Assembly: GCA_965112735.1 (NCBI GenBank)
Contig: OZ218953.1
Span: 4,588,001 to 4,652,000 of the forward strand
DNA: 64,000 nucleotides
Reading direction: 5' to 3'
Source: Phaeosaccion multiseriatum
Lineage: Eukaryota > Protista > Ochrophyta, other classes
Positions 16,156 to 54,300 of the stretch are shown here, piece by piece; positions within the stretch are counted from its first letter, which is position 1, and every line of letters starts with the position of its first letter. The position numbers were made by a program, and so were the translations under genes. The notes under the pieces were generated by a model. It was given only the letters and a program-made list of their open reading frames with translations. It was not told where the DNA came from and did no database searches.

Positions 16156-19100
16156 CGCTGACTGACTGACTGACTGACTGACTGACTGACTGACAATGAC
16201 GCGCGGAGGACGACTTGTTCAACCGCTGAGCTCAGCCCCTCAGCCACAAAGCAGTAGAGGGCGCTTTCCCCACCCACCCATCCACCCTGCTCGCAACAAC
16301 AGCGCGTAGGTTGAGTCCGATACTACTGCCCCACTGCCCCCTCCCTCTTCCCTCCTTCGAGCTCATCCTATCCTTCTCCTCCTCCCCTCCCCCCTCCCAT
16401 CCCTCCTTCCCTCCTGCTTATCCTCCTCCTCTCCTCCTCCTCCTCCTCCTCCTCCTCCTCCTCCTCCTCCTCCTCCTCCTCCTCCTCCTCCTCCTCCATC
16501 CTGCTCTACGACTATCCGTTCTTTTCCCTCCTCACCTGCAAGGCCGTTGCCGCACTCTGTATGGAAGCTTCGGTGCCGAGCCCTGCCGACAGATACTGCA
16601 GCCCTGGTACCAGAAGTAGAGGGAGGGGAGGAGCGCCCCCTCCTGAGGAGTGGCGGGGTGACAAACCACCACCACCACCACCACCACCACCACCACCACC
16701 ACCACTACTACTACTGCTACTACCGTGTAGTGGGCTGCCTGGTCTACTTCCACCAGCAGCGGTGCTATTGATCGTAACCACGTGATGATTGGCGCGGAAC
16801 TTGGCATGAAGCTTGCTTGGCTTCCATGGGGCGAGACTGAAGCTCGGGTAGGCGCCTACCAGTTTGCATCCGGCTTCAGACCATAGGGGACGTCGGGGAG
16901 AGAGAGGGGGGGGGAGATACACAGGCAAGGTAAGGCTAGGTTCACGGATGGGGGAGCGAAAGTGGAAGAATGGGGAGATGGATGGTTTTTTACAAGTTGT
17001 GGGGCGAGGGGGAGAAGCACCACCAAGAGGACGAATGAAGCTGTAACGGAAGTGGTGCATTCCCCATAAGTGCAACCCTCTCTCTTTCCCCTTGCCCCTT
17101 GCCGCTGGCCCCTGCCGTACCGTTGAGCACGAGTGGGTGTGTAGTGGACAAGGCCGGGTTGTTGAGAAGTTGTTGAAACACGCCGTCCAACAGGTGCTTC
17201 GTAGCCCCCCTCTCTTCCCGCAGACCGCCGCCATTGGCCTGAAACCGATTGGTCGATCCTGCTGTTGCTGCCTTTCGTGCGTCCTTGGCTACGAGCTGCA
17301 GACAAAGCAAACAGACCTGTTTTGTTCCGTGGTTCGTTCGCAAGGCAGGCAGACAGGGTAGCATCAACAAGTCGTGGCTATCGGACGGTGTATACAGCGA
17401 GTCTCTCGTCTGTGGAGCGAAGCCCCAAACCTGTCCCCCAAACACGTGAAAAGCACCCAAAGCAAAGCACTGAAGCAAAGCACCAAAGCAAAGCACTAAA
17501 GTAAAGCAAGCACGCACCTCCAAGGCCTCCCAGCCCCCCCCTGGGCCCTCCACCCGGCCCAGCACGGCCCCGAAGAAGGCATCGCTGCCCAAGACGTGGA
17601 AGACGGAAAGAAACAAGTCCTTCACCTGCTCGCGGAACTCCAGAAAGCTGTGCATTGGGGAGTTACGAGCATTCGGGATACATACATACATACATATATA
17701 CATGGCAGTGGATGACAGTGGATGGGGATGGGTATGGGTGTGGGTGTGGGTGCGAGTGTGAATGTGAGTGTCTGTGTGGGTGCGGGTGGAGAAGAGCAGG
17801 ATAGACAGAGCCAAGAGGCACTCAGACACGCGCAAGCGTCTCTGACTGACTGACTGACTGACTGACTGGCTGACTGACTGGCTGACTGACTGACTGACCG
17901 ACTGACTCGATGACTTAGTGATGCGACTCTCTCACCTGTCCTCGTCATCATCGGGTCCGCCCCCGTTGTCCCCCCATTCAGTGAAGCCTTCCCTATATTT
18001 ACACTGCCCCAGGAGGACCTGAAGCAAGAAGCAAGAAGCAAGAACCAAGGAAGAGGCTTTTCGTGAGGGTACGCACGTGATAGATAACGCTGCAGTCACA
18101 AACTCTCTCTCTCACACACACACACACACAATCAGCCAATCAGCCAATCAGCCATCTCCAACCAGCGGTTGTACATGGAGACCTGCGGACTCGGAGGCCA
18201 CACACGCACCCACACACCCACATCCATACCCCCCCCCCCCCACACACACACACCCACACACGCACACACGCACGCACACGCACACACACACGCACACGCA
18301 CACACACACGCACACGCACACGCACACCCACACACCTCCAACAGCCGGATGTACATGGGAGCCTGCAGACTTGGGGGCCGCTCCGCCATGGGCACATCTT
18401 GAAGCTCCAGCCAGAAGTCAAGCGCCACAGTGGCCACGTTGCGCAGCGGACAGGCCGTGCACGCAAGAATTGACTCCACCAGGTGCAGCCCGTTGTCCTC
18501 CCCGTTTACAACCAAGTCCATTTCTTGCTCTGTGTGTGACGGGCAGATAGATAGACAGATAGATAAGTAGATAGATAGATAGATAGATAGATAGAGATAG
18601 GAGAGCGGGTTGCGTTGCGTTGCGTTGAGTCGGTGCGGAGTTAGCGTTGGAGTTGCGTATTTCATTTTGCCATCAAGGAAAGGGAGTTAGAAGGCTTGTG
18701 TATTGGGGGTTGATTGAAGAGAAGAGCTGGTGTCAGAAGCACGAAGCCCGTTCCATTCATTCGCAGAGTACGGTAATAACATGTGGGGATGTCTCGCTGA
18801 CCCCAATTTACTTATCTCAAGACGGCATCAAGGAGGGTCACATTTGAAGGTGCTCACCCACCACCCAATAGCATCGCTAGAATAAAGCTCATGACAAACA
18901 TCCCACTCACTCACTCCCGCACTCAATCACTCACTCACTCATGCGCTCACTCACACGCTCCCTCCCTCTCTCCCCCCCTCCCTCCTTCCCTCACTCACTC
19001 ACTCACTCACTCACTCACTCACTCACCCGCAAACTTGAGCAGCAAGACACAAATGGCCATTGCCGTTTCCTCGTCTTGATGTGCCGTGGCCGCGGCGAAT

Positions 19101-35396: not shown

Positions 35397-36530
35397 ATGT
35401 CTCTCTCCTGCCATCACCACGGCAAAGGTAGACTATTCCCCCGCGGATTTCGGTCCTGAGCGAAAGAAGAAAGCTTCCTCTCATCGCCCTGTTCCCTCCC
35501 TTTCTCTGCAGGCCGTGTGCGTGTGATGAAGGTACGCAGGACCCCGGAGCGCCACGAGGTGATGGAGCTTACCGTGGAGGTCATCCTCGTCGGGCCAGTG
35601 GACGAAGCCTTCAATGAAGGCGACAACACAAAGAGTGAGTAAGCCAGGGCGCCTCGCTCTCTGCCTTTATTTTCTGACGCCTCTTCCCCCCCTTACACCT
35701 CTCTGTACTTCTGGCAGCTATCCCCCTTCTCTCCTTTGACATCTTTTCTTCCTTCTTCCCCTCTCTTTGCACCCACAGTCGTTGCTACGGACACACAGAA
35801 GAACACCGTCTACGTCCTGGCGCAGCGCCACGACTTTACCTCTGCAGAGGAGTTTGCCCTGCTACTGGCTGAGCACTTTGTGACGACATACCTAGCAGCT
35901 GTACACAAGTGCAAGATCACCATCGACGAGGACATTTGGGAGCGGCATGTTGCCTGTCCTCCAGGCAGCATGGACAAGACCGCCCACCACCATGGCTTCA
36001 TGAAGAACAGCCCCATGCGGGGCTGGGTGTGCGCCACCGCGGAGACGAAGAAAGACGGGGCAGTGGACAAGACCCTCTCCGCGGGTGTTAGAAGCCTGAC
36101 GCTCCTCAAGACCACGCAGTCCTCCTTCAAGGGCTTCATCCGCGACGAGTACACCCTGCTCCCGGAGGTGGATGATCGCTTGCTGTCTTCGTCCATCGAC
36201 GCAGATTGGTCATACGACTTGGCGACAGCGCCTCCCTACGGCGAGGCTCGTGTAGCCGCGGTGGATGCCCTTGTGCACGGCTTCCTCGGGCCCGCCGATA
36301 CGGGAGTACCCAGTGCCAGTGTTCAGGCCACACTGCTGGACATGGGCAAGGCTGCCCTCGCCGCTGTACCGAGCATGACGAGCATATCCATACAGGCACC
36401 CAACATTCACAACCTTCCGTGGCAAGGCGATGCACTTGGGGTCAAGAACGAGGACGCCAGCGGAAAACCCGACGTGTTCATACCCACGAGCGAGCCCCAC
36501 GGCTTAATCTCCGCGACCGTCGAGAGACGA
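35397..36530 (+). other. UOX: Uricase (urate oxidase) domain of the fusion
   Basis: HGK, VATDTQKNTVY, signature LLKTTQSSFKGFIRDEYTLLPEVDDRLLS, SASVQATL, PNIH, PHGLISATVER. Confidence 0.95.
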
Positions 36531-39500
36531 AGAGGAGGAGGAGGAGGCGATGATGTTAATACAGTCTTGAACGCTTCTCGTCATTGTTCCTCCTACTACT
36601 CGTTTGAGGAATGCGTTCCTCCTGCGATGGGTAGTCGACTCCTCTCGCAAGCCGCAAGCGGCTCTACGATGAGGGGTGGTAACTCTTCTGGGATCCTCTT
36701 CGCTCTGGGCGTGCCCACACTGCGGGCACCGGAGCACGCTGCCTTGACCTTCCTGGCGAGTCTTGTGCACGGGGAAGTGAGTGGTCGCCTCTCCAAGCTT
36801 CTGCAGAGGCGCGCTGAGGACCGGAGGTTCATAGACCGCCGCTCTCGCTCCCTCGCAACCTGTGCGAACCTTGCTCCGACCACAACGTCGCTTCTTGGCC
36901 ACCAGGACCAGCACGGGAGGGTGGTGGTGGGCCCCCTCAGGACAGACTACGCTAGCGTGGCGGAGGAGGGCGAGCAGCCCGTCGCTCCCCTTCCTGCGCA
37001 CCTCGACCTGTCCACCTCCCATGTGACTGTGTTTGGCCCGGCGGACTCGGCGGAGGCCTGCAGGGAGTATCTACACGCATTTCAGGATAGCAGAACCAGC
37101 AGCAGTGGTAGCGGCAGCGGCAGCAGCGGCAGCAGCGGCGCGAATAAGGCAGGGAAGTGGGGGGCCGACCTGGAAGATTCACAGACTCCGTTTCCAGAGC
37201 TCGTGCAGGCTGCTGCCGAAAACTTGACCGAGAGCTACCGCCTGATTCGGGATGAGAACACTGGAGCGGCAGGGGCAGGGCACGGGGCTGGACTGTCCTT
37301 CCCTGTTGTGCGGCTGCCTGGCTTGGGGTTGCCTTCTACGCATGCCTTCATCGCCGCCTCAGGTACGCCCGTGCCCCTCCACCTCTTCATCTTCGCACTA
37401 CACGTGTTTCACAACTGGCAAGACCCCGCGGCGCGATGCTTCTACCTACCCAAGTTGGAGAACGAAGAGGAGGCGGCATACTTTGCCTTCCTCATTAAGC
37501 TCGCTGAGGAAAGGCTTAAGGAGCTCCATCCGTCATATGAAATGGGCTCGGTGCGCGTCTTTTGCGTGATTGAAAGCGGTCGTGCCATCTTCCGAGTGCG
37601 TGAGATTGCAGAGGCGCTGTACCCTTACTTCTGTGGCGCCAGTCTCGGATGGTAAGTCACTGTCAGCCCACTGCCAACCCATTTTCAACTCAAACACCCA
37701 CCGTCAACCCAACCCTTTTACCAACCCAGGCACGACTACTTGGCATCCACCTCTCGCCTCTTCAAGGAGGCCGAACACTGGATCATGCCTTCCAAAACAG
37801 ACCCAGACATAGTGGTCAAGCATATCCGCGCACAGCACGTGCTGCTAGGAGACGTGGTGGGGCGGGGCATGGGTGCTGTGAGCGTTGGTGGTATGTATGG
37901 CGTCGTCCCTGTGAGCGACGACCCCACTTCCGCTTCGTATCAAGTGAGTCTGCGCGGACTGTTCAAGGACGTGATTGCTCAGCTCAGACGCGGTTTGGTG
38001 GGGTTCTGGGTGGCGTATGCGCCCTTCGCCCGCATTGGAACTGAGATGGTTCGCGTGTGGCTGCTGGCAGAAGGAGGAGGTGGAGGTGGAGGCGGGGGAG
38101 GAGGAGGAGGAGGAGGAGGAGGAGGAGGCATCATGGAGGTGGTAAAGAGGCATCTCACCGTACCAGAGTATGTGGAGCAAGTAGCAGCCTTCCTTGCACA
38201 AGGAGACGAACAGAGGGAGGCAGCAGCAGCAGCAGCAGCAGCAGACTTGGTGCTTGACGAGAGCCCGAGGCGGCCGCCCAGTGGAGAGGCGCTCGAGTCG
38301 CTGCTTCGAGTCAACATCTCGCACTGCCTGGTCTACCTCAACGAATGGCTACAGGGCAGCGGGAACATCTCGCTGGAGTCCGAGATTGAAGGTGAGAGGA
38401 GGGAGAGGAAGGGTTTTGCTTTTGTTTGGGGAGGGGGGGGGGCGAATGAGTTGTCGAGTTGCGTTGTGGGGCCAAGTACTTTTGGCTTCGTAGTAACGGC
38501 ACCGCTCATGCCCTCCGCCAATGGACCACCGAAGAAGGAATCGCAGCTTAATGCCCTTCATCCTGACCCCGTCAGTATCTTGTTTGCTTGCATACGTTGC
38601 TTACTTGCTTGCTTGGCTGGCTTTGCTTGCTCTGCTTGCTACTTGCTTTGCTTTGCTTTGTGTGCTTGCTTTGCTTGCGTTGCTTGCCCTGCTTATTGCT
38701 GACTTGCTTTGCCCTGCTTTGTCCTGCTTTGCCCTGCTTAACATGGTCTGTTTCCTTGCCTTTGCTTGCTTGTCTCTTGCCACCACTCCAACTCAGGCAT
38801 TCCGGTGCGGGTGGTGGACGATCTCGCGACTGTGGAGCGGTCCCGCTGGAGTCTGTGGAGGGAGCTCAAGGCGGGCAGGCTGGGTATGAGCCGCTTCTTG
38901 ACAGCCACTTTCGAAGAGGCACTCAGTATCTCCAAGGCAAACACCAACAGCAACACCAACATCAACACAAACACCAACAAGCAGCAACAGCAGGGGAGCT
39001 CCTCCCCCCAGTTGGGCTCCCCAAAGTCAACGAAGTGGCAGTCCGTGGCCTTGGCCGTCTTTCTGAAGCTCATGACGGAGCTCGAGTCCCCCGCGGAGTT
39101 CGTGCCCGAGCTGCTCATGCCCTTCACGTCGGCCCTCATTCGGCAGGCTTCGGACCCGCTTGCTGCTATGCAGAGCTGCGGAGGAGACGAGATGCTGGTA
39201 CTCCGTCCACCCCTGAGGCAGTGGTGCTACTACTTTAAGATGTGTGGGTGTACGCGCTTTGCAGATGAGGTGTCACAGAGGGACGTGTTGCTAGATGTAC
39301 AACACGTCAAGCAGGTGATCGGGACCTTCAGCAAGGAGGAGGTTGTGCAGGCAGCCAACTTCAATGGAGATATCGGCGGCAGCCCCGAAGGGATGGACAG
39401 CTTGGCCAGAGAAGAGCAGGCTAAGGTGCTGAACGGAGAGGAGGGGGTGCGGCAGGCTCTGCGCGAGCTCGGGCAACAGTACCTTGCCAAATTCGACGGG

Positions 39501-42500
39501 ATGAAGTTCATGGTCTCGGCCAAAGGAAAGTCGGGGCCAGAGCTGCTTCCCCTTCTCGAGGCACGCATCAAGAACAGCGAGGAGCAGGAGGTGCAGCATG
39601 CGAGGGAGGCCCTTAGGGAGATCACAGTCAAGAGGCTGACCTCAAAGCCGCCCGACTGCGCAAGGGTCAGGATGGAGGCTCTCTTGGCCAAGCATGGAGT
39701 TGCTGGTGCGTCCATTGCCCTGGTGTCTAGCTCCTCTTCCTCCTCCTCCTCCCCCTCCTCCCTCTCCTCGGCCGCCGCCACCAAGACCCATCAGCAGCAG
39801 CACATTGTGCTGGGTCTACGGGACAAGGCCTCGGATGAGCCCGTCACAGCGGATACGTGCTTTGAAGTGGCGTCTCTGAGCAAGTCCGTGGGCACGGCGT
39901 TTAGCATGGAGTACTTTCGGTCGCGAGGCGTCTCCATCTTTGACACCCCTGCCAACGCATTGCTCAAGAAGGGGGGCTCCTCCTTCCGCCTGAGTGGGCC
40001 GTACGCAGAGGAAGTGATGCTGGTACACCTCATGTCACACTCGGCACTCAACCTGCACTACGTGAACGGAGTGCCGCTGGATAGGGAGGATGCGAATGGA
40101 GGCTTGCCCGACATTCGACTACTCATCGAGGGGTGCTCTGATCCCGTTTCGTACACGCCCATCGAAGGTGAGAGAGAGATGGAGAGAGAGAGGCACGGCA
40201 TATCATCAATGAGAGAGAGAGGCACGGCATATCATCAATGAGAGAGAGAGGCACGACGTGTCACCATTGTGGTGCTTGAGTCCCCTTCCTCACTTCCTTC
40301 TTGTGGCCTGTCTGCCTTTCACCATCTCTCCCTTCTGTCTCTATCCCCATCTCTCTCTCCCTTTCCTCTCTCTCTCTCTCTGTACCCCCCCTCTCTCTCG
40401 TCTCTCCCCCCTCACTCGCCCTCTCTCGTGTAGTGCTCGGCCCGCCCGGTGAGGTGTTCCGCTACAGCGGGGGAGGCTTCCTCGTGCTACAACACATCAT
40501 CGAGAGCCTGGAGGGCGGCAAGAGGAGCATCGCTTCCATCTCACAGCCCTTCATTGACAGCCTTTTCGGCACTGCTGTATCACCAACTGCTGCTGCTTCT
40601 GGTGCTACTACTGGTGGTCCCGATCCGGAAGTAGCCTCGTCCTCCCTCTTCACCTTCGACCCCAACCCCAACCCCAGCAGCAATTTCAAGGTGGCTTGCG
40701 GCTACGACAGCGAAGGCGCAGTCATCCCGGGCACGCGCCTCGTCTTCCCAGCGTTTGCTGCAGGAGCGTTGGCGACTCCGGCGGCCATCCTGCACTTCTT
40801 GCAGACCCTCAGCGCGGCCTACGCAGACCCGAGAGGAGGGGGAGGAGCGGGGGCACTCGCAGGCCCTATTTCGCACGACACGGCTGTACTCATGCTGCAC
40901 GGGACGGACAAGGGGTGCCTCGACTTTATGGGTTGTAAGATGGGGGTGGGTATCTTCACGGCAGAGGCGGGTGGGAATCGCTTTGCCGTCCACCAGGGGG
41001 CGAACGACGGTTTCCGCGCGCTCTTTTTGCACTGCTACAAGGGCCCTGACGTGGGGACGGGTGTTGTGGTGTGCGCCAATGGAGGCAACAAGGCCGTGGG
41101 CTTCATCAGTGAAGCGGTGCAGGAGGTGCTAAAAGTGCTCAAGGTTACGGGTGTGGACTGCCATCTCTTCGACCGCCCACCGCCTTCCCTCCAGCAGGGG
41201 GGTGCCAAGACGGTTGTCAAACAGGAGGACCTTGTCAATTTGGGCTATAAGCAAGCCCTCTTTTCGGCCTTCAGGCCCGACCTGCCCGCGAGAATCGAGG
41301 ACGTCGACCCCGAGGCCTCAACGGGTGCCAACGACCCGCGTTGGGAGTACAACGGAGCCCGAGACGCGAAGGTGGTGTGTGTCACCAACCAGGCCTTTGC
41401 ACGGGCGGACAACCTTTGCTCGGCGCGCTTACCACTCTTCGACCCGGCGTTGTTTGGCCCTCAGGGCAAGGTGATGGACAGTTGGGAGACCACCCGACAC
41501 AACCCGGCCGTGTGCGATGAGCTTGTGCTGGCCCTGAAGGAGAGCATGGCAGTGAGCTTTGTCATGCTCTCTACCAAGTACCACACCGGAAACAACTTCA
41601 AAGAGGTAGAGGTGTTGGGTTTCCAATCCGAGGCGGCGGCGGTGGCAGCGATGCTGACCAAGAGCGGCGCTTCCTCTGCTTCTGCTTTGGGTGCTGTGGA
41701 GGGGGAGGGAGTGGGAGGAGGAGCGGTGCTGCTGCTGCCCAGGCACATGCTGAAGGGCCACTCGGAGCTCCGGGTGACTGTGGACCCCTCCACCTCCACC
41801 AAACCTGTGTCGCACATTCTCGTGCGCGCCTTCCCAGACGGGGGGCTGACTCGACTCGGCCTCTTCGACCGGAGCCTGCCCCAGGCGTTTCTCGAGGGCT
41901 TTGCTCCTGCTGCAGAGGCCGTGCCCATCCCCTGCTCGGACCCCGTACCTGCGCCGCTCAAGCCCCTCGCGATGGAGTACAACACCCCCAGCGAGGAGGA
42001 CATTGCTGCCAATCTGGCGACGATTCAGGTCGGGGAGGAGTACAACGTGGCAGGAAGGGCCTTTGGAGGGCGCTTCGTGTCGGCCACCAACGAGCATTAC
42101 GGGCCTGCCAGTGCTGCCCTGAGCCCCTACCCTCCCCTCGACATGTTTGACGGTTTCGAGTCGGCCAGGAGCCACAACCGAGAGAACGAGGAGTGCATCA
42201 TCGTGGCGCTTGCCAAGCCCTGCCTTCTCCATCGCATCGAGCTCGACTTTACCTTTTTTGTCAACAACGCTCCTCTGGAAGTCGCCATCTGGGGCATTGA
42301 CGCAAGCAGTATGAGCGGCAGTACGAATGGCGGTGGCGGTGGCGGTGACTTGCCCTGGAGTGAGGCAGCGCAGATGGTGGGTCGAACGTGTGTCAAGGCC
42401 TTCGCGGCCAATGTCAAGACCTTCGAGTTCCGCGGCGAGCAGCAGCAGAAGGTGACGGTGGATCACCTCAAGATCTCGCTGTACCCTGACGGAGGAGTCA

Positions 42501-42532
42501 ACCGCATACGGGCCTTCACCATGAAGGAGTAA
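35397..42532 (+). CDS. Five-domain purine-catabolism fusion protein: uricase + malate synthase-like + OHCU decarboxylase + beta-lactamase-fold serine hydrolase + allantoicase (~2052 aa)
   Basis: Exons 35397-35427, 35512-35634, 35779-37651, 37730-38391, 38797-40167, 40434-42532; all GT-AG and phase-compatible; total 6159 nt = 2053 codons with no internal stop. Splicing restores conserved motifs across junctions (HGK|GRVRV, GDNTK|IVATDTQKN, GASLG|WHDY). Confidence 0.9.
36730..39150 (+). other. Divergent malate synthase-like TIM-barrel domain of the fusion
   Basis: TVFGP, ADLEDS, VVRLPG, FYLPKLENEEEA, CVIES, GASLGWHDYLAS, VGGMYG, GFWVA, NISHCLVYLNEWLQGSG, DDLATVERSRWSLW parallel malate synthase A motifs (DFEDS, YLPKLE, LIET, GRWDY, GGM, GTWVAHP, EDAATAEISR). 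Confidence 0.85.
39215..39640 (+). other. OHCU decarboxylase domain of the fusion (conserved His read as Asn in this copy)
   Basis: CGCTRFADEV, F(N)GDIG, AREEQAKV, L.ELG..Y..KF...FMVSA.GKS..E.L..LE.RI.N..EQE...A...L..I...RL fit the UraD family. Confidence 0.85.
39660..41140 (+). other. Beta-lactamase / serine hydrolase (class C, AmpC-like fold) domain of the fusion
   Basis: HGVAGASIALV, PVTADTCFEVASLSK (SxxK at 39873-39884), LMSHSAL, PPGEVFRYSGGGF, AAGALATP, HQGANDGF, GVVVCAN. Confidence 0.88.
41350..42529 (+). other. Allantoicase domain (two repeats) of the fusion
   Basis: TNQAFARADNL, GKVMDSWETTRHNP, TKYHTGN, FPDGGLTRL; second repeat GGRFVSATNEHYG, MFDGFESAR, FFVNNAP, LYPDGGVNRIRAF. Confidence 0.92.
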
Positions 42533-42792
42533 ATAGTGTGTATTGCATTGCTCTTTACATTAGTATATACATATTTACAAGTCCAAAGTGACACGCGACA
42601 GGGTGGTTTTCGCTTGCCATTGCCACACATATCCCTCTCTTTGCTCGCGGTTGCTTGTGCTGTGCTGACGCCCCCTTCAGTCACCCCTCAATCGAGCTGC
42701 TGGGCGTAAAGCACAAGAGGCAAAAGAAAGAGTTGTATGGTGTGAGGCTGAGCGCCTCTGCTCTGGGCCTTCACATGACTCAGGAGATGTGA

Positions 42793-43039
42793 CTAGCTGC
42801 CTCTGTAGGTGGAGTATCCAAACGGGTTCAGCAGCAAGGGCACATGGTAGTGCTCCGTGTCTGTGGTCTGGAACACGATTGACACCTCAGGATAGAAGCA
42901 CGCCGTACTGAGGCTCTCTTACATGTTGTAGCCGCCGGTATCGAAGTGCAGGCGATACACGCCTTGAGAAGGCACAGAGGAACGCACAGCAGGGAGCCGA
43001 GTAGCAGCAGCAGAACCAGAGCATCAGCACCACCACCAT

Positions 43040-43073
<34 letters not shown>

Positions 43074-43567
43074 GTACTCTCAGCGATGGTCAGTAAATGG
43101 CAAATTCCTGTCGCTCTTTTTTTCTTCTTCTATGCAGCAGGATACCACAACAAGGCCCAATCAATCCCGACCCCCCCTGCTGCTGGTCGTAAGTCTTCCT
43201 AAACTTTCCTCCCAGGTTCTCTCACCCGGCTCTAGAAGGACGTCGCTCTTCAGCAGATCCTTCACCCGCCCATCGTTGTCCGTCATCCTTTCGCTCGCCG
43301 CCCATGAGAGAGGAGGGTCGTAGAGAATAAGAAGGATTAGAAGAGCACGGGGGACCCGATCCGGAGCTCACACCCTCAAACAGCATTTGTTCTCTTTCTC
43401 CTCCTTACTCTATCAGATGTTGCTCACCCTCGGCAATGAGGGTCCATTCCTCTGTTGACTCCCCTGGCTGGTGGTCTCGCTCTGCTGCTGGGAGCGTGGG
43501 AGCGAGATCATCCTCACTCCCGCGGTAGGCTTTCCCAAGCTCATGTCCAGGATAGATACGAGAGGTA
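42793..43567 (-). pseudogene. HIU hydrolase pseudogene (copy in duplication unit 1)
   Basis: Retains ...[19 protein letters not shown]. However, the last exon reads GGC TAC AAC ATG TAA, an in-frame stop where the intact copy has GGC TAC TAC GAG. Exon 1 has indels and no matching start codon. Confidence 0.88.
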
Positions 43568-43655
43568 TTGAAATTTGAACCATGTAGTGGATTGCCCTTT
43601 TGGTGCCATCTGTGCTGCAAAAGTAACGACTTTTTACATCACCTCAACTTTTCCT

Positions 43656-44140
43656 CAGCCCCATGCACGCCTCATTTTTGCTCTGGGCCGCTAGGCCGCT
43701 CGGCCTTCGGCCGAAATAGGCCTAGGCCGGCGGCCTCCGGCCGCTCTAGGCCGCTCACTCTTCAGTCCTAGGCGGCCTCTAGGCAGCCTCCCAGTGACCG
43801 TGGGCGCGTGCGTGGTGCCGCCCAGCCAGTGGCTGGGTAGCAGCACACCTGTAAGCCTGCACTTTGCACTTTTTTTGCACTCCTCGTAGGGCCAGCGAGG
43901 CGGAAAGAGACAACTACGCCTCACTTCAAATCCCATGCAATACATTTGCTTAAACTGACTACTCTTTGCACTCTGGGCACTTCCACCGTCCGCCTAGTTG
44001 GCGTCTGCCCTAGGCCGCGGGCCTCCGGCCCGCCTAGGCCGCCTAGGCGGCAGCATATAAATAGGCCGAGGGCCTACGGCCCTCGCTAGGCCGGGCAATT
44101 TTCCCAAATAGGCCTAGGCCGCTAGGCGTGCATGGGGCTG
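43656..44140. mobile_element. Non-autonomous TIR element (485 bp) with perfect 17-bp TIRs and CCTAGGCCG subterminal repeats
   Basis: CAGCCCCATGCACGCCT ... AGGCGTGCATGGGGCTG; many CTAGGC/GCCTAG motifs near both ends; absent from the paralogous spacer in unit 2; no TSD seen. Confidence 0.72.
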
Positions 44141-44850
44141 CGTCAGTCTCCTCCGAGCGAAGCAAAGGGACGCCGTGTATGCTTTCGATTCCTCTGCCTT
44201 ATCTCCTGCGCGCAGATTGACCGCTGAAGACCCACAGCCAGCCGGTGTTTTTGACCCCATAGCACGTGCATAGACTGGCAAGTTCAGATGTTCGGCCTGC
44301 CTACTAAGGAATGTGGGTGGCGAGTGAACATGCTGCTCAGGTTTTTTCCGGCCCTGCGGGGGCCTAGGCGAGTGCTTTCAAATAAACACCTGAGCTGACG
44401 GCCCTAATGCACCATATTACAGTTCCATGACCAAGGGTACCAAGTGGTACCGCGCCGGGTCATTATCATTGATGACCCTCTACCTCGTCACCCCACCAGT
44501 AATTTGCCGTAAGATGGCAATTAACGGCTTCGCCCCCCGGCACGTTCCGTTCCCGCTCAACTCGCATCCTTTCTTCCTTAAACACAGGGCTCATACAGCC
44601 AGCAGATACAAAGGTAGACGGCACACATGATGGGTCTTTACCTTGAGTTCCTTATTTTAATGCGCTCTGTCCACAGGAGCCCTGCTGCTGCTACACATTT
44701 CCGCACAAAACCCAAAGGTCGTCAGCACAACTGCTCACTGTCCTTACCCCCCCCACTCTCCAACTCCGCTCTTCCTTCCTCACAGCGTCCCTACTATTCA
44801 GGGCCAAGCCTTCGTTTGACCAGAAGCTGTTACACTGCTGAGCGGGGGGG

Positions 44851-47800
44851 ATGCCGCCCAATGCGGACGACCGGCAGGATAACGGAGTGGACGAGTGCAG
44901 GCAGCCGGCGAGGCGAGCTTTCAGAGGGTCAATCATACATTCGTTGGGCCTCGATGATCTTGAGATCGTCCCAGATGGGCTTATTATTGTCGATGCGGAT
45001 GGAGTTATTCTGCAGCTGCTGGACCTCAGCAGCGAGGAGAGCACTTTGGCCACTTCTCGCCTCTTCAAGGAGGCCGAACACTGGATCATGCCTTCCAAAA
45101 CAGACCCAGACATAGTGGTCAAGCATATCCGCGCACAACACGTGCTGCTAGGAGACGTGGTGGGGCGGGGCATGGGTGGTGTGAGCGTTGCTGGCATGTA
45201 TGGCGTCGTCCCTGTGAGCGACGACCCCACTTCCGCTTCGTATCAAGTGAGTCTGCGCGGACTGTTCAAGGACGTGATTGCTCAGCTCAGACGCGGTTTG
45301 GTGAGGTTCTGGGTGGCGTATGCGCCCTTCGCCCGCATTGGAACTGAGGTGGTTCGCGTGTGGCTGCTGGCAGAAGGAGGTGGAGGCGGAGGAGGAGGAG
45401 GAGGAGGAGGAGGAGGAGGCATCATGGAGGTGGTAAAGAGGCATCTCACCGTACCAGAGTATGTGGAGCAAGTAGCAGCCTTCCTTGCACAAGGAGACGA
45501 ACAGAGGGAGGCAGCAGCAGCAGCAGCAGCAGCAGACTTGGTGCTTGACGAGAGCCCGAGGCGGCCGCCCAGTGGAGAGGCGCTCGAGTCGCTGCTTCGA
45601 GTCAACATCTCGCACTGCCTGGTCTACCTCAACGAATGGCTACAGGGCAGCGGGAACATCTCGCTGGAGTCCGAGATTGAAGGTGAGAGGAGGGAGAGGA
45701 AGGGTTTTGCTTTTGTTTGGGGAGGGGGGGGGGCGAATGAGTTGTCGAGTTGCGTTGTGGGGCCAAGTACTTTTGGCTTCGTAGTAACGGCACCGCTCAT
45801 GCCCTCCGCCAATGGACCACCGAAGAAGGAATCGCAGCTTAATGCCCTTCATCCTGACCCCGTCAGTATCTTGTTTGCTTGCATACGTTGCTTACTTGCT
45901 TGCTTGGCTGGCTTTGCTTGCTCTGCTTGCTACTTGCTTTGCTTTGCTTTGTGTGCTTGCTTTGCTTGCGTTGCTTGCCCTGCTTATTGCTGACTTGCTT
46001 TGCCCTGCTTTGTCCTGCTTTGCCCTGCTTAACATGGTCTGTTTCCTTGCCTTTGCTTGCTTGTCTCTTGCCACCACTCCAACTCAGGCATTCCGGTGCG
46101 GGTGGTGGACGATCTCGCGACTGTGGAGCGGTCCCGCTGGAGTCTGTGGAGGGAGCTCAAGGCGGGCAGGCTGGGTATGAGCCGCTTCTTGACGGCCACT
46201 TTCGAAGCGGCACATCGCATCTCCAAGGCAAACACCAACACCGTCACCAACAAGCAGAAGCAGCAGCAGCAGCAGCAACAGCAGGGGAGCTCCTCCCCCC
46301 AGTTGGGCTCCCCAAAGTCAACGAAGTGGCAGTCCGTGGCCTTGGCCGTCTTTCTGAAGCTCATGACGGAGCTCGAGTCCCCCGCGGAGTTCGTGCCCGA
46401 GCTGCTCATGCCCTTCACGTCGGCCCTCATTCGGCAGGCTTCGGACCCGCTTGCTGCTATGCAGAGCTGCGGAGGAGACGAGATGCTGGTACTCCGTCCA
46501 CCCCTGAGGCAGTGGTGCTACTACTTTGAGATGTGTGGGTGTACGCGCTTTGCAGATGAGGTGTCACAGAGGGACGTGTTGCTAGATGTACAACACGTCA
46601 AGCAGGTGATAGGGACCTTCAGCAAGGAGGAGGTTATGCAGGCAGCCAGCTTCCATGGAGATATCGGCGGCAGCCCCGTAGGGATGGACAGCATGGCCAG
46701 AGAAGAGCAGGCTAAGGTGCTGAACGGAGAGGAGGGGGTGCGGCAGGCTCTGCGCGAGCTCGGGCAACGGTACCTTGCCAAATTCGACGGGCTGAAGTTC
46801 ATGGTCTCGGCCAAAGGAAAGTCGGGGCCAGAGCTGCTTGCCCTTCTCGAGGCACGCATCAAGAACAGCGAGGAGCAGGAGGTGCAGCATGCGAGGGAGG
46901 CCCTTAGGGAGATCACAGTCAAGAGGCTGACCTCAAAGCCGCCCGACTGCGCAAGGGTCAGGATGGAGGCTCTCTTGGCCAAGCATGGAGTTGCTGGTGC
47001 GTCCATTGCCCTGGTGTCTAGCTCCTCTTCCTCCTCCTCCTCCCCCTCCTCCCTCTCCTCGGCCGCCGCCACCAAGACCCATCAGCAGCAGCACATTGTG
47101 CTGGGTCTACGGGACAAGGCCTCGGATGAGCCCGTCACAGCGGATACGTGCTTTGAAGTGGCGTCTCTGAGCAAGTCCGTGGGCACGGCGTTTAGCATGG
47201 AGTACTTTCGGTCGCGAGGCGTCTCCATCTTTGACACCCCTGCCAACGCATTGCTCAAGAAGGGGGGCTCCTCCTTCCGCCTGAGTGGGCCGTACGCAGA
47301 GGAAGTGATGCTGGTACACCTCATGTCACACTCGGCACTCAACCTGCACTACGTGAACGGAGTGCCGCTGGATAGGGAGGATGCGAATGGAGGCTTGCCC
47401 GACATTCGACTACTCATCGAGGGGTGCTCTGATCCCGTTTCGTACACGCCCATCGAAGGTGAGAGAGAGATGGAGAGAGAGAGGCACGGCTTATCATCAA
47501 TGAGAGAGAGCGAGGCACGGCATATCATCAATGAGAGAGAGAGGCACGGCATATCATCAATGAGAGAGAGAGGCACGGCATATCATCAATGAGAGAGAGA
47601 GGCACGACGTGTCACCATTGTGGTGCTTGAGTCCCCTTCCTCACTTCCTTCTTGTGGCCTGTCTGCCTTTCACCATCTCTCCCTTCTGTCTCTATCCCCA
47701 TCTCTCTCTCCCTTTCCTCTCTCTCTCTCTGTACCCCCCCTCTCTCTCGTCTCTCCCCCCTCACTCGCCCTCTCTCGTGTAGTGCTCGGCCCGCCCGGTG

Positions 47801-49881
47801 AGGTGTTCCGCTACAGCGGGGGAGGCTTCCTCGTGCTACAACACATCATCGAGAGCCTGGAGGGCGGCAAGAGGAGCATCGCTTCCATCTCACAGCCCTT
47901 CATTGACAGCCTTTTCGGCACTGCTGTATCACCAACTGCTGCTGCTTCTGGTGCTACTACTGGTGGTCCCGATCCGGAAGTAGCCTCGTCCTCCCTCTTC
48001 ACCTTCGACCCCAACCCCAACCACAGCAGCAATTTCATGGTGGCTTGCGGCTACGACAGCGAAGGCGCAGTCATCCCGGGCACGCGCCTCGTCTTCCCAG
48101 CGTTTGCTGCAGGAGCGTTGGCGACTCCGGCGGCCATCCTGCACTTCTTGCAGACCCTCAGCGCGGCCTACGCAGACCCGAGAGGAGGGGGAGGAGCGGG
48201 GGCACTCGCAGGCCCTATTTCGCACGACACGGCTGTACTCATGCTGCACGGGACGGACAAGGGGTGCCTCGACTTTATGGGTTGTAAGATGGGGGTGGGT
48301 ATCTTCACGGCAGAGGCGGGTGGGAATCGCTTTGCCGTCCACCAGGGGGCGAACGACGGTTTCCGCGCGCTCTTTTTGCACTGCTACAAGGGCCCTGACG
48401 TGGGGACGGGTGTTGTGGTGTGCGCCAATGGAGGCAACAAGGCCGTGGGCTTCATCAGTGAAGCGGTGCAGGAGGTGCTAAAAGTGCTCAAGGTTACGGG
48501 TGTGGACTGCCATCTCTTCGACCGCCCACCGCCTTCCCTCCAGCAGGGGGGTGCCAAGACGGTTGTCAAACAGGAGGACCTTGTCAATTTGGGCTATAAG
48601 CAAGCCCTCTTTTCGGCCTTCAGGCCCGACCTGCCCGCGAGAATCGAGGACGTCGACCCCGAGGCCTCAACGGGTGCCAACGACCCGCGTTGGGAGTACA
48701 ACGGAGCCCGAGACGCAAAGGTGGTGTGTGTCACCAACCAGGCCTTTGCACGGGCGGACAACCTTTGCTCGGCGCGCTTACCACTCTTCGACCCGGCGCT
48801 GTTTGGCCCTCAGGGCAAGGTGATGGACAGTTGGGAGACCACCCGACACAACCCGGCCGTGTGCGATGAGCTTGTGCTGGCCCTGAAGGAGAGCATGGCA
48901 GTGAGCTTTGTCATGCTCTCTACCAAGTACCACACCGGAAACAACTTCAAAGAGGTAGAGGTGTTGGGTTTCCAATCCGAGGCGGCGGCGGTGGCAGCGA
49001 TGCTGACCAAGAGCGGCGCTTCCTCTGCTTCTGCTTTGGGTGCTGTGGAGGGGGAGGGAGTGGGAGGAGGAGCGGTGCTGCTGCTGCCCAGGCACATGCT
49101 GAAGGGCCACTCGGAGCTCCGGGTGACTGTGGACCCCTCCACCTCCACCAAACCTGTGTCGCACATTCTCGTGCGCGCCTTCCCAGACGGGGGGCTGACT
49201 CGACTCGGCCTCTTCGACCGGAGCCTGCCCCAGGCGTTTCTCGAGGGCTTTGCTCCTGCTGCAGAGGCCGTGCCCATCCCCTGCTCGGACCCCGTACCTG
49301 CGCCGCTCAAGCCCCTCGCGATGGAGTACAACACCCCCAGCGAGGAGGACATTGCTGCCAATCTGGCGACGATTCAGGTCGGGGAGGAGTACAACGTGGC
49401 AGGAAGGGCCTTTGGAGGGCGCTTCGTGTCGGCCACCAACGAGCATTACGGGCCTGCCAGTGCTGCCCTGAGCCCCTACCCTCCCCTCGACATGTTTGAC
49501 GGTTTCGAGTCGGCCAGGAGCCACAACCGAGAGAACGAGGAGTGCATCATCGTGGCGCTTGCCAAGCCCTGCCTTCTCCATCGCATCGAGCTCGACTTTA
49601 CCTTTTTTGTCAACAACGCTCCTCTGGAAGTCGCCATCTGGGGCCTTGACGCAAGCAGTATGAGCGGCAGTACGAATGGCGGTGGCGGTGGCGGTGACTT
49701 GCCCTGGAGTGAGGCAGCGCAGATGGTGGGTCGAACGTGTGTCAAGGCCTTCGCGGCCAATGTCAAGACCTTCGAGTTCCGCGGCGAGCAGCAGCAGAAG
49801 GTGATGGTGGATCACCTCAAGATCTCGCTGTACCCTGACGGAGGAGTCAACCGCATACGGGCCTTCACCATGAAGGAGTAA
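44851..49881 (+). CDS. Chimeric gene: guanine deaminase N-terminal 67 aa fused in frame to the malate synthase C-half + OHCU decarboxylase + beta-lactamase-like domain + allantoicase (~1433 aa)
   Basis: Exons 44851-45682, 46088-47458, 47783-49881 (4302 nt, open). MPPNAD...SSEESTLA matches the protein starting at 51387; TSRLFKEAEHW onward matches the fusion gene. Confidence 0.82.
47474..47607. repeat. ~29-31 bp intronic minisatellite (GAGAGAGAGGCACGGCATATCATCAAT): about 4 units here, about 2 in the paralogous intron (40183-40256)
   Basis: Direct reading of both introns. Confidence 0.8.
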
Positions 49882-50141
49882 ATAGTGTGTATTGCATTGC
49901 TCTTTACATTAGTATATACATATTTACAAGTCCAAAGTGACACGCGACAGGGTGGTTTTCGCTTGCCATTGCCACACATATCCCTCTCTTTGCTCGCGGT
50001 TGCTTGTGCTGTGCTGACGCCCCCTTCAGTCACCCCTCAATCGAGCTGCTGGGCGTAAAGCACAAGAGGCAAAAGAAAGAGTTGTATGGTGTGAGGCTGA
50101 GCGCCTCTGCTCTGGGCCTTCACATGACTCAGGAGATGTGA

Positions 50142-50382
50142 CTAGCTGCCTCTGTAGGTGGAGTATCCAAACGGGTTCAGCAGCAAGGGCACATGGTAGT
50201 GCTCCGTGTCTGTGGTCTGGAACACGATTGACACCTCAGGATAGAAGCACGCCGTACTGAGGCTCTCGTAGTAGCCGCCGGTATCGAAGTGCAGGCGATA
50301 CACGCCTTGAGAAGGTACAGAGGAACGCACAGCAGGGAGCCGAGTAGCAGCAGCAGAACCAGAGCATCAGCACCACCACCAT

Positions 50383-50419
<37 letters not shown>

Positions 50420-50879
50420 GTACTCTTACTCTCAGCGATGGTCAGTAAATGGCAAATTCCTGTCGCTCTTTTTTTCTTCTTCTATGCAGCAGGATACCAC
50501 AACAAGGCCCAATCAATCCCGACCCCCCCTGCTGCTGGTCGTAAGTCTTCCTAAACTTTTCTCCCAGGTTCTCTCACCCGGCTCTAGAAGGACGTCGCTC
50601 TTCAGCAGATCCTTCACCCGCCCATCATTGTCCGTCACCCCTTCGCCGCCCATGAGAGGAGGAGGGTAGAGAACAACACAAGTGAGCGACCTGACTGGAA
50701 GAGCACGGGGGACCCGAAGCTCATTCATTTGTTCCTTACTCTATCAGATGTTGCTCACCCTCGGCAATGAGGTTCCACTCCCCTGTTGACTCCCCTGGCC
50801 TCTGCAGGGAGATCCTCACTCCCGTGGCAGGCTTTCCCAGGCTCGTGTCCAGGATATGCGAGGTGATCTGGCTCACCAT
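50142..50879 (-). CDS. uraH: 5-hydroxyisourate (HIU) hydrolase, transthyretin-like, 115 aa (exons 50759-50879, 50578-50640, 50142-50305)
   Basis: [18 protein letters not shown]|VTDNDGR, G|[36 protein letters not shown] (YRGS signature). Confidence 0.93.
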
Positions 50880-51386
50880 ACTCCACGCAGCAGCAGAGCA
50901 AGAGCCAAAGGGAAATAGAATGGGGGAAGAGTGAGCGTAAAAGTGTAAAAGTAATGGATGGCAACTAACGGCTTCGTGCGTGCCAAACTCCGAAAGTTCG
51001 ATCAAAGTTCCCGCCCTCAATTATTTTTCCCTTTCTTCCTTAAAGCCAGGGCTTATACAGCCGACAGATACAAAGGTAGATGCACAAATAATGAGTCTCT
51101 ACCCTTCTTTCCTTAGTTTAATGCGCTGTGTCCACAGGAGCCCTGTTGCTGCTAACCATTCCGTACATAACCTTAAGTTCGTCAGAACAACTCCTCACAA
51201 TCCTTTCCTTCCTCTCCCCCTCTCCACCTCCTCTCTTCCTTCCTCAACCTTAAAACTGATGAACTTCTCACAGTCCTTCCCCACCTCCCCCACTCTCCAA
51301 TTCCGCTCTTCCTTCCTCACAGCATCCCTACTATTCAGCGCCAAGTCTTCGACTGACCAAAGCTGTTACGCTGCTGAGCGGGGGGC
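50880..51386. promoter_or_regulatory. Putative bidirectional promoter shared by HIU hydrolase and guanine deaminase
   Basis: 507-bp head-to-head spacer between two genes of the same pathway; a diverged copy lies upstream of the chimera (~44497-44850). Confidence 0.5.
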
Positions 51387-54300
51387 ATGCCGCCCAATGC
51401 GGACGCCCACCAGGATAACGGAGTGGACGAGTGCAGGCATCCGGCGAGGCGAGCTTTCAGAGGGTCAATCATACACTCGTTGGACCTCGATGATCTTGAG
51501 ATCATCGCGGATGGGCTTATTATTATCGACGCGGATGGAGTCATTCTGCAGCTGCTGGACCTCAGCAGCGAGGAGAGCACTTTGGCCCTGGAGAGAGACT
51601 TCTCGGAGATTGAGATCGCAGACCACAGCGGGCAGCTCATCATCCCGGGCATGATTGATGCTCACTGCCACGCACCTCAGCACCTCTTTGCCGGGACGGG
51701 CATGGACCTGCCGCTGCTGGATTGGTTGGAGCGATACACCTTCCCCACGGAGGCCAAATTCTCAGATGAGAGCATGGCTGCTGAAGTGAGCATAGACCAG
51801 AGCTTCGAGATAGAGCAGTAGGAGAGGCCTACCTCGCTTTGCAGAGTGGAGTACGCGCGCGCCCTTTCTCTCTCCCTCCCTCTCTCTCTCTCTCTGTGTG
51901 TGTGTGTATGTGTTTCTCTCTCCTTCACTCACTGTCGGTCATTCTCTGCTGGAACACACGTCGCGCCCCCACCTACCCCTCTCCGCGTCCCTCCAGGTTT
52001 ACGAGAAGGTCGTTGCTCGCCACCTCAAGTCCGGCACAACCTTTGCCTCTTACTTCGCGACCATCCACACAAACGCAAGTATAGCTCTGGCTCAGGCATG
52101 CAACAAGGCCGGCCAGCGCGCGTACATTGGCAAGGTTACAATGGACCGCAACAGCCCGGACTTCTACATTGAGGAGGCCGATGAGGCTGTCAAGGAAGCA
52201 GAGAGCTTTGCGGTTAAGGTGCTCAACATGAACGCGGTGAGTGGGCGGGTCTGAGGCGCAGAGGTTGCTCTGCCTGTTCCGTGTCCTCCTCGCCCCTTTC
52301 TTCTCTGACTCTCCCCCTCTCTTTGTCTCCCTGTGTCTGTCTCTCTGTATCTCTCTCTGTCTCTGACTGTGTGTGTGCCTCTCGCTCTCTCTCGCGCGCT
52401 CTCCCTCTCTACTGTCTCTCTCACGACGCAGCGCGGCGCCAAGCACTCTGCCGACTGCGAGGCCTTCTGGAGGGGGGAGAGCAGTGAACCCCCCCCTCCG
52501 CTGCTCAACCAGAGACACACACCCACTGTGCTACCGTGTATCACTCCGCGCTTTGTGCCCTCTTGCACGGGGGCTACGATGGAAGGCCTTGGGAACATCG
52601 CGAAGAAGTTCACTTTGCCTGTGCAGGTACGCACCAAACACGCATGCATTACGTATCATCACACACACGCACATACACGCACACACACGCGCAAGTACAC
52701 ACACACAAGCACACATACACATATGACATACACATATCACATACACACAGGCAAGAACACACACACACACATAAGCACACACACAAACGAAACGGGGAAA
52801 TCAGCGCGGAGAATTAAGAGGAGGAAGCAAAGGCGCAAGCCAAGCGTATCCACCAAACTCAAGCCCTTCCTCCACGACCTGTCCCTCCGCCCACCCCTTA
52901 CTCCTCATCTTCAGTCGCACTTGAGTGAGAACCCAGACGAGATTGCGTGGGTGAGTGAGCTCCACCCCGACTGCGAGACATACGCGCATGTGTACGAGAA
53001 GTACAATTTACTCGGCCCCTCTTCCTTCATGGCCCACTGCTGCCACTCGCCCGAGACGGAGCTGACACTGCTCGCGAAGTCTCAGACCGGAGTAGTGCAC
53101 TGCCCCTCGTCGAACCTGATGTTGTGTTCGGGTATCGCGGATATCAAGGTAAAGGCTTCACATTCAGTCCATCACTCCCTTCCTCATTTCATTACTCCCT
53201 CACTTCCTCACTCACTCACTCACTCACTCACTCACTCACTCACTCACATACACACTCATTCACTCTTTCCCTCACGTACTCACCCACTCCCTCCCTCTCT
53301 CTCTCCCTCACTCCTTCTCTTGCTTCCCCACAAATTCCCTCCCTGCCTCCTTTCCTTAGAAAATGTTGAGTATGGGCATCAATGTTGGGATCGGTACGGA
53401 TGTGGCTGGAGGCTTCAGCCCGAGTATGTTCGATGCAATGCGCCTCACCCTCCAGTCTTCCCGGTGAGTGGGATGAGAGTGAGTGAGTGAGTGAGTGAGT
53501 GAGTGAGTGAGTGAGTGAGTGAGCGAGCGAGCTTGCCTCGCTCCTCCGCCTGATCGACCAAATCTCTTCAGAACCCCGCCCTTCTTACTTTTATCCATAT
53601 CTCACTGTGGCTTTCCTTATCGTAACTTGCTCGCTGCCTCCACCTCAATCCTCAACACCTTCATATACAACCTGAAGAGCTCACGCGCTGGCCAAGTATC
53701 AGAGTCCGCTAGCGACACCCCAGACACGTAAGTTCAACACTTAGTTCAACACTTTCCTCCTTCTGGTCCAAACTACATGTGCCCGTTCGCCCTCCTCCGT
53801 TTCTGTCTTATCTTGTGCCCCCCTCCCCTCGCCGACCCCCCGATCTCCTCATTTTACTTTTTCGCTCTTCTGCGTTGTTCACAAAAGGTGTGTCGATTGC
53901 GGACACTCTGAGCGTCCGAGAAGTATTCTACTTGGCCACCGTGGGGAACGCACAGGTGTTGGGCAACGGTAAGATGCTCGGCAACTTCCTCCCCGGCAAG
54001 AAGCTCGATGCGCTGGTGGTGAATGTGGACACAGGGGCAAGCTTCGACGTGTTTGGGCATGAAGGGCTCGAGGAGCTCTTCTCCAAGTTCATCTTTCAAG
54101 GCGACGATCGGTGCATCAGCAGCGTCATTGTCAATGGGGAATATGTGCTGGGCAGGGAGAAGGCAGTGGCGGTTACGTCCGAAGAGTCGTTTGCCTCTCA
54201 TGCCGCGATTGAGACGGTGCATGTGCTGGAGGAGATGGAGAAGACTTTCAACAAGCGAGTGCAGGATAGTTCCAACTTTATCAAGACGGCCCACCCTGCC

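Follow-up and report, generated by a model that had tools for sequence, protein, structure and literature searches.

A chimeric gene at the junction of a tandem duplication in a purine-catabolism cluster of the alga Phaeosaccion multiseriatum

Introduction

When a tandem duplication joins parts of two genes into a new reading frame, is the resulting chimera kept because it works, or is it a relic held open by exchange with its parent? We addressed this question for a chimeric gene (44851-49881) in the stramenopile alga Phaeosaccion multiseriatum, in which the start of a guanine deaminase gene is joined in frame to the 3' part of a gene for a five-domain fusion protein. The window, meaning the whole stretch of DNA that was analysed, comprises 64 kb (contig OZ218953.1, 4588001-4652000) of an assembly of 67 Mb in 22 contigs, and all coordinates below are counted from its first base. 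Its spliced genes and GC content of ~58% mark it as eukaryotic DNA, and it contains no ambiguous bases (no N).

Junction chimeras are a known route to new genes, with few clear cases outside animals and plants. The present locus is compact. Donor and recipient both belong to purine nitrogen recycling, the event partly reverses an enzyme fusion, and the domain losses of the two copies complement each other in a setting of gene conversion. Judged from the patterns of change between the copies and their homologues, the chimera has about an even chance of being a working, retained gene with a division of labour at the level of domains.

Results and Discussion

The tandem duplication and its junction

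Self-BLAST of the window paired 37747-40255 with 45050-47548 at 98.1%, 40182-43468 with 47533-50799 at 97.6%, 44729-45051 with 51262-51587 at 91.4%, and 44568-44782 with 51030-51246 at 82.6%, and these pairs therefore describe a tandem duplication with a single new junction between 45049 and 45050. The duplication is real, spans ~7.3 kb, and lies inside a purine-catabolism cluster with the ancestral gene order fusion gene (+), HIU hydrolase (-), guanine deaminase (+), all three being genes of that pathway. Together with a MAFFT alignment, the self-BLAST pairs delimit two units. Unit 1 (37747-45049, + strand) begins at base 18 of exon 4 of the full-length fusion gene and comprises the remaining 3' part of that gene, an HIU hydrolase pseudogene, a miniature inverted-repeat transposable element (MITE), a guanine-deaminase-type upstream region and guanine deaminase exon 1 codons 1-66. 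In unit 2 (45050-51587, + strand), the fusion-derived part of the chimera is followed by an HIU hydrolase that is intact, by the guanine deaminase promoter and by the first part of guanine deaminase exon 1; homology to unit 1 stops at 51587.

The sole new junction (45049-45050, + strand) reads ...TTGGCC followed by ACTTCTCGC..., that is, Leu-Ala followed by Thr-Ser-Arg. The string given for it in the original prediction, GAGAGCACTTTGGCC joined to ACTTCTCGC, was found at 45035-45058, and the junction sequence occurs once in the whole 67-Mb assembly; a 30-mer across the junction had no match in the JGI metagenome contigs. The breakpoints fall in guanine deaminase exon 1 and fusion-gene exon 4, and both parental sequences are intact on either side. 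In the simplest reading, guanine deaminase ...TTGGCC would have been joined directly to fusion-gene ACC TCT CGC..., and a silent change from C to T would have followed at 45054. Guanine deaminase also carries ACTTCTCG 10 nt beyond the breakpoint, and an alternative join there would therefore have been out of frame; a history in which the genes were joined at this ACYTCTCG similarity and a later 10-nt loss restored the frame is more speculative. The TTGGC microhomology that had been proposed as meaningful did not stand, the similarity of the parental breakpoints being ordinary relative to random pairs of sites in these genes (P = 0.56), and since TTGGC and ACYTCTCG both score like such random pairs we rejected microhomology as the cause of the junction. 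We regard the structure as a whole, the duplication together with the chimera at its junction, as very probably genuine.

Structure of the chimeric gene and its parent

The coding sequence of the chimera runs over 44851-45682, 46088-47458 and 47783-49881 (4302 nt; 1433 codons plus the stop), interrupted by introns at 45683-46087 (405 nt) and 47459-47782 (324 nt). As predicted, the join is in frame and the reading frame passes through all exons without a stop, both introns being bounded by GT-AG; we found no frameshift, premature stop or lost splice site that would mark the chimera as a pseudogene. In exon 1 (44851-45682, + strand), the guanine deaminase ATG and codons 1-66 give way at codon 67 or 68 to the C-terminal half of the malate-synthase-like barrel; matches to malate synthase were only faint here (Pfam, NCBIfam). 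Exon 2 (46088-47458, + strand) encodes the malate synthase C-terminal domain, a low-complexity stretch, the OHCU decarboxylase and the start of the beta-lactamase-like domain, and exon 3 (47783-49881, + strand) completes the beta-lactamase-like domain and adds two allantoicase repeats before the stop codon. Aligned with guanine deaminase exon 1 (51387-51584), residues 1-66 show 7 amino-acid differences, and the rest of the chimera corresponds to fusion-gene sequence that begins at base 18 of exon 4, an exon that starts at 37730 and is preceded by a GTAAGT...CAG intron.

The parental full-length fusion gene (35736-42532, + strand) was covered here by the open reading frame (ORF) from 35736 and exons at 37730-38391, 38797-40167 and 40434-42532, and its domains follow the order uricase, malate-synthase-like, OHCU decarboxylase, beta-lactamase-like and allantoicase. 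In Pfam searches of its stop-free pieces, Uricase and MS_TIM-barrel positions 3-104 matched within 35736-37652, in the full-length copy only, which bears out the claim that the chimera lacks uricase and the N-terminal half of the malate synthase barrel. The part shared by both copies begins at MS_TIM-barrel position 124 of 248 (barrel positions 124-217 in exon 4), and OHCU_decarbox, Beta-lactamase and two Allantoicase repeats then follow in both, so that this module is indeed kept in the chimera. The breakpoint lies directly after the GASLGWHDYLAS block of the malate-synthase-like barrel, and the conserved PKLENEEEA and GASLGWHD blocks, which we take to hold the metal ligands of malate synthase, lie 5' of it, leaving the chimera without a complete TIM barrel. 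The HxH metal site of guanine deaminase is likewise absent, the HCH motif of the parent lying past the breakpoint in ...PGMIDAHCHAPQ. Because the guanine deaminase piece ends before this site and half of the barrel is missing, the chimera is neither a guanine deaminase nor a malate synthase. It reads instead as a partial 'un-fusion', in which a predicted three-enzyme module has been freed from a five-enzyme gene.

The region upstream of the chimera (44512-44850, + strand) is homologous to the bidirectional intergenic region between HIU hydrolase and guanine deaminase (50956-51386), with a divergence of 8.7% over the proximal 105 nt and ~17% beyond, and a 77-nt difference in length. The start and ~340 nt upstream of it thus derive from guanine deaminase, as the original prediction had it, and the module may be under a guanine deaminase-derived promoter.

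Two low-complexity coding tracts differ between the copies. A poly-Gly tract, (GGA/GGT)n, at 38065-38128 and 45368-45420 differs by four codons, and its GGAGGA-type repeat matches other sites in the window, such as 16400-16500. At 38903-38979 and 46194-46270, in the malate synthase C-terminal region, both copies carry a low-complexity Asn/Thr/Gln run in place of a well-conserved block of the homologues (...FIRKxxSxxxKxVQVxW...), and the run is strongly unlike between the copies, as slippage of a microsatellite predicts.

Complementary losses in the two copies

To assign the substitutions that separate the copies, we polarised them against 14-20 outgroup homologues from a profile-free library search, the best being 48% identical. 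At invariant or near-invariant sites, the chimera was derived only within the truncated malate-synthase remnant (G114A, G152R and E318A), and the full-length copy was derived at G110A and at three sites of the OHCU decarboxylase (E425K, S465N and H467N). The last of these changes concerns a conserved His that is present in the chimera (CAT, 46654-46656) and replaced by Asn in the full-length copy (AAT, 39363-39365). This position aligns to His67 of the Klebsiella OHCU decarboxylase structures (PDB 5uou, 3o7h) and is His in 19/20 fusion homologues and in 19/20 further homologues, mostly stand-alone enzymes, where it lies in an HPRIG / FHGDIG motif. A conserved active-site His of OHCU decarboxylase has been described in a recent review as the stereospecific proton donor (PMC13751858). 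The match to OHCU_decarbox (PF09349; cut-off 24 bits) scored 72.3 bits for the chimera and 67.9 bits for copy 1. A search of the genome for a third OHCU decarboxylase found none, and since the PF09349 matches are these two copies only, the chimera alone has an OHCU decarboxylase in which the conserved His is kept. Annotators should note that the five-domain protein probably lacks OHCU decarboxylase activity in this alga. The OHCU decarboxylase patch differs between the copies by 9 replacement changes to 1 silent, a small island that is not significant alone.

Divergence, age and gene conversion

As a single event made both ends of the duplicated unit, the ends would be expected to be equally diverged, but they were not. 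Divergence between the units was 2.1% over 37747-38096, 0% over the next 806 nt (intron 1 included), ~19% in the microsatellite-like coding patch, where the alignment is unreliable, 0% over the 257 nt after that patch, 3.3% over 39237-39549, and 0.18% over the next 3369 nt, which include intron 2 and the 3' untranslated region (UTR). Further on, it was 2.7% in the 3' part and 15% in exon 1 of the HIU hydrolase pseudogene, 8.7-17% in the promoter blocks and 6% in the guanine deaminase coding piece (Ks ~0.10). A core of 5.2 kb is thus diverged by 0-3% in a mosaic, the microsatellite-like patch aside, against 6-17% in the flanks, and permutation of the difference positions showed them to be clustered both over the whole unit (P < 0.0005) and within the core (P = 0.004). 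No substitution fell in the 1065 nt of introns and 3' UTR, against 23 in the coding sequence once the low-complexity patch was set aside (Fisher P = 0.008). The sole difference in either intron is in intron 2 (40168-40433 and 47459-47782), where a tandem repeat of ~30 nt differs in copy number (net 58 nt).

The duplication is old, because its flanks are 6-17% diverged, its HIU hydrolase has several lesions and a MITE has been inserted; a recent duplication, to which the core Ks of ~0.006 would point, was rejected, since the flank from the same event is diverged by 6-17%. The simplest reading of this mosaic is that interlocus gene conversion would have repeatedly homogenised the core of an old duplication. 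Tandem paralogues are well known to undergo such conversion (PMC3924837). Islands of divergence that survive it are a recognised sign of selection (PMC3728101, PMC3924837), and a greater difference between exons than between introns is classically taken to show that selection at particular coding sites opposes conversion (PMC3728101). It follows that the 1367 fusion-derived codons, although open throughout, give no independent evidence of selection.

The 66 guanine deaminase codons stand apart from this core. They have accumulated ~7.5 replacement and ~4.5 silent changes (Ka ~0.05, Ks ~0.10, ratio ~0.5), a ratio that cannot be assigned to one lineage without an outgroup, and they have kept the ATG and the frame with no indel, set against four indels in the adjacent 360 nt upstream (P ~0.1).

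A working gene or a relic

The tandem duplication joined 66 non-catalytic codons of guanine deaminase, ATG included, to the 3' part of the fusion gene, and the ATG is preceded by ~340 nt from between guanine deaminase and HIU hydrolase. If the chimera is a working gene, as we hold with evenly balanced confidence, it would be transcribed from a promoter of the guanine deaminase type and would provide OHCU decarboxylase along with the beta-lactamase-like and allantoicase domains; repeated gene conversion would keep it and the full-length copy alike, its half malate-synthase barrel would be a dead remnant, and the full-length copy would be letting its own OHCU decarboxylase site decay through the change of His to Asn. 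A more far-reaching version, which we offer only tentatively and think rather doubtful, is that the fusion protein is being dismantled, with its last three enzymes set free as a gene of their own under a promoter from the same pathway, OHCU decarboxylation passed to the chimera, the site in the parent lost, conversion homogenising the rest and selection guarding the differing island.

Several observations weigh against a working gene, the case for which is read from the sequence throughout. Gene conversion alone can hold the ORF of the chimera open. Outside the low-complexity patch, the copies differ by 17 replacement changes (3095 sites) and 6 silent ones (1003 sites), which gives a ratio of replacement to silent divergence (Ka/Ks) of ~0.9, and no purifying selection is visible; as a test of retention, we set this ratio aside as uninformative, coming as it does from 23 changes. 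The reciprocal pattern of losses rests on 7 polarised sites (one-sided Fisher ~0.11). OHCU decarboxylates spontaneously, and the loss of the His from the full-length copy could therefore be tolerated without the chimera. Half a TIM barrel with 66 foreign residues may misfold, and the promoter-homologous region, besides its 9-17% divergence and 77-nt length difference, has the MITE 0.7 kb upstream.

The strongest alternative is that the chimera is a silent or useless relic whose ORF is open only via conversion from the functional full-length copy, the change of His to Asn being tolerated there, and we judge this to be a serious possibility, if one that falls short of an even chance. It accords with a near-identical core, with introns and a 3' UTR that lack substitutions between flanks diverged by 6-17%, with the Ka/Ks of ~0.9, with the three replacements in the chimera at invariant malate-synthase sites, and with the death of the HIU hydrolase that shares the same bidirectional promoter, the MITE lying in the intergenic region. 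However, the 66 guanine-deaminase-derived codons could not be repaired from the fusion gene, yet their ATG and frame were kept through 6% divergence; all three losses at conserved OHCU decarboxylase sites are on the full-length copy and none is on the chimera; and the excess of coding over intron differences is not predicted by neutral decay combined with conversion. The original prediction had argued for retention from an intact ORF beside a decayed HIU hydrolase, and this part of the argument is weak, the contrast being largely explained by gene conversion. The polarised substitutions, with the His lost from the full-length copy and kept in the chimera and no third copy in the genome, put the same claim on a footing that is suggestive, although not statistically decisive.

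An assembly artefact, in which haplotypes or contig ends were abutted to give a false tandem duplication with an accidental in-frame join, would fit a junction microhomology that does not exceed chance and a join that would be in frame by chance one time in three. The join, however, lies inside a multi-megabase contig with no N, the assembly holds no alternative copy of the region, and seven amino-acid differences in 66 guanine deaminase codons are unusually many for alleles. Alleles would also have to differ by 0-0.2% over kilobases but by 15-17%, with a MITE and gene-killing lesions, next door, and we consider an artefact very improbable. We think it equally far-fetched that the duplicated exons serve as an alternative 3' cassette, with read-through transcripts spliced from the exon 4 donor of copy 1 (38391) to the exon 2 acceptor of the chimera (46088) giving a five-domain isoform with a His-bearing OHCU decarboxylase: the splice sites are identical and their phases compatible (both phase 1), and such use would explain why the His matters in the second copy, but the copy 1 terminator would have to be read through over 7.7 kb that contain an antisense pseudogene and the MITE.

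Comparison with known systems

Sdic is a classic case of a junction chimera. Chimeric genes at the junctions of tandem duplications have been recorded in population surveys of Drosophila (PMC5460883), and the gene described here is a chimera of this textbook type in an unusual setting. As in the Drosophila chimeras, a partial tandem duplication has breakpoints in two co-oriented genes, the upstream gene contributes its 3' part, to which the promoter and first codons of the downstream gene are fused in frame, and the parental genes are intact on either side. Unlike them, its recipient is a multi-enzyme fusion, donor and recipient belong to one pathway, the host is a stramenopile alga, and the chimera is known here from sequence.

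The copies form a mosaic in which the flanks have diverged much further than the core, the introns have diverged no further than the exons, and a short island in the OHCU decarboxylase is rich in replacements. In these features they resemble tandem paralogues under concerted evolution (PMC3924837, PMC3728101); here conversion is read from the paralogues, the best outside homologue being 48% identical.

The three-domain module also has natural counterparts. Two proteins, P0023 (996 aa) and P0027 (961 aa), consist of OHCU decarboxylase, beta-lactamase-like and allantoicase domains with no malate synthase part, and their existence shows that the module is evidently able to stand alone; P0001, P0004 and P0009 are four-domain proteins that add a malate-synthase-like part. 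The chimera has the same module in the same order as all of these, at 33-51% identity, but unlike P0023 and P0027 it adds half a malate-synthase barrel, the malate synthase C-terminal domain and 66 guanine deaminase residues, and it arose secondarily from a five-domain gene. P0003 and P0007 (~1000 aa, beginning MDDLATxERSRW) were rejected as further natural forms without the barrel, being more likely ORFs called from an internal Met. Both start just past the position of an intron in this alga and may be ORFs on intron-bearing eukaryotic contigs, hinting at a shared intron position.

Duplication-degeneration-complementation describes the subfunctionalisation of duplicated genes. The present copies resemble that model in their complementary losses, the malate synthase part being dead in the chimera and the OHCU decarboxylase His lost from the full-length copy. 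They differ from it in that enzyme domains rather than regulatory modules are lost, that one of the losses was made by the breakpoint itself, and that complementation is inferred. Should the chimera prove to be expressed, the locus would serve as a natural experiment that bears both on the causes of fusion and un-fusion among metabolic enzymes and on the way in which selection maintains small functional islands against homogenisation.

Neighbouring genes and elements

The HIU hydrolase (PF00576) in unit 2 (50142-50879, - strand) is intact, with exons at 50879-50759, 50640-50578 and 50305-50142 and 115 codons ending in YRGS. Its counterpart in unit 1 (42793-43590, - strand) is a pseudogene with three clear lesions, in line with the decay that had been predicted: the ATG and the region of the His motif are gone, exon 1 has a frameshifting insertion of ~29 nt, and exon 3 has an in-frame TAA at 42921-42919. 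In addition, the acceptor of pseudogene exon 2 (43219-43290, - strand) appears from the alignment to read AA instead of AG, a new AG standing one base further along; this would count as one more lesion.

The MITE-like element (43656-44140; no strand assigned) lies between this pseudogene and the ATG of the chimera and is present in unit 1 only. Its 485 bp are bounded by terminal inverted repeats of 16 bp (CAGCCCCATGCACGCC ... GGCGTGCATGGGGCTG), and no clear target-site duplication was seen. Copies that share 75-87% identity, at least 45 in number, are scattered over many contigs of the assembly. The ~360 nt beside it (44141-44500) have neither a counterpart in unit 2 nor another match in the genome, and were either inserted in unit 1 or deleted from unit 2.

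Guanine deaminase (51387-54200, + strand), the donor of the 5' end of the chimera, is an intact multi-exon gene, and TIGR02967 was the best NCBIfam family for all four exon pieces searched, which cover model positions 2-92, 90-169, 202-311 and 321-401. Model positions ~170-201 fall outside these pieces, and the gene probably has one more small exon between 52250 and 52900. The introns of this gene are rich in CA/CT microsatellites.

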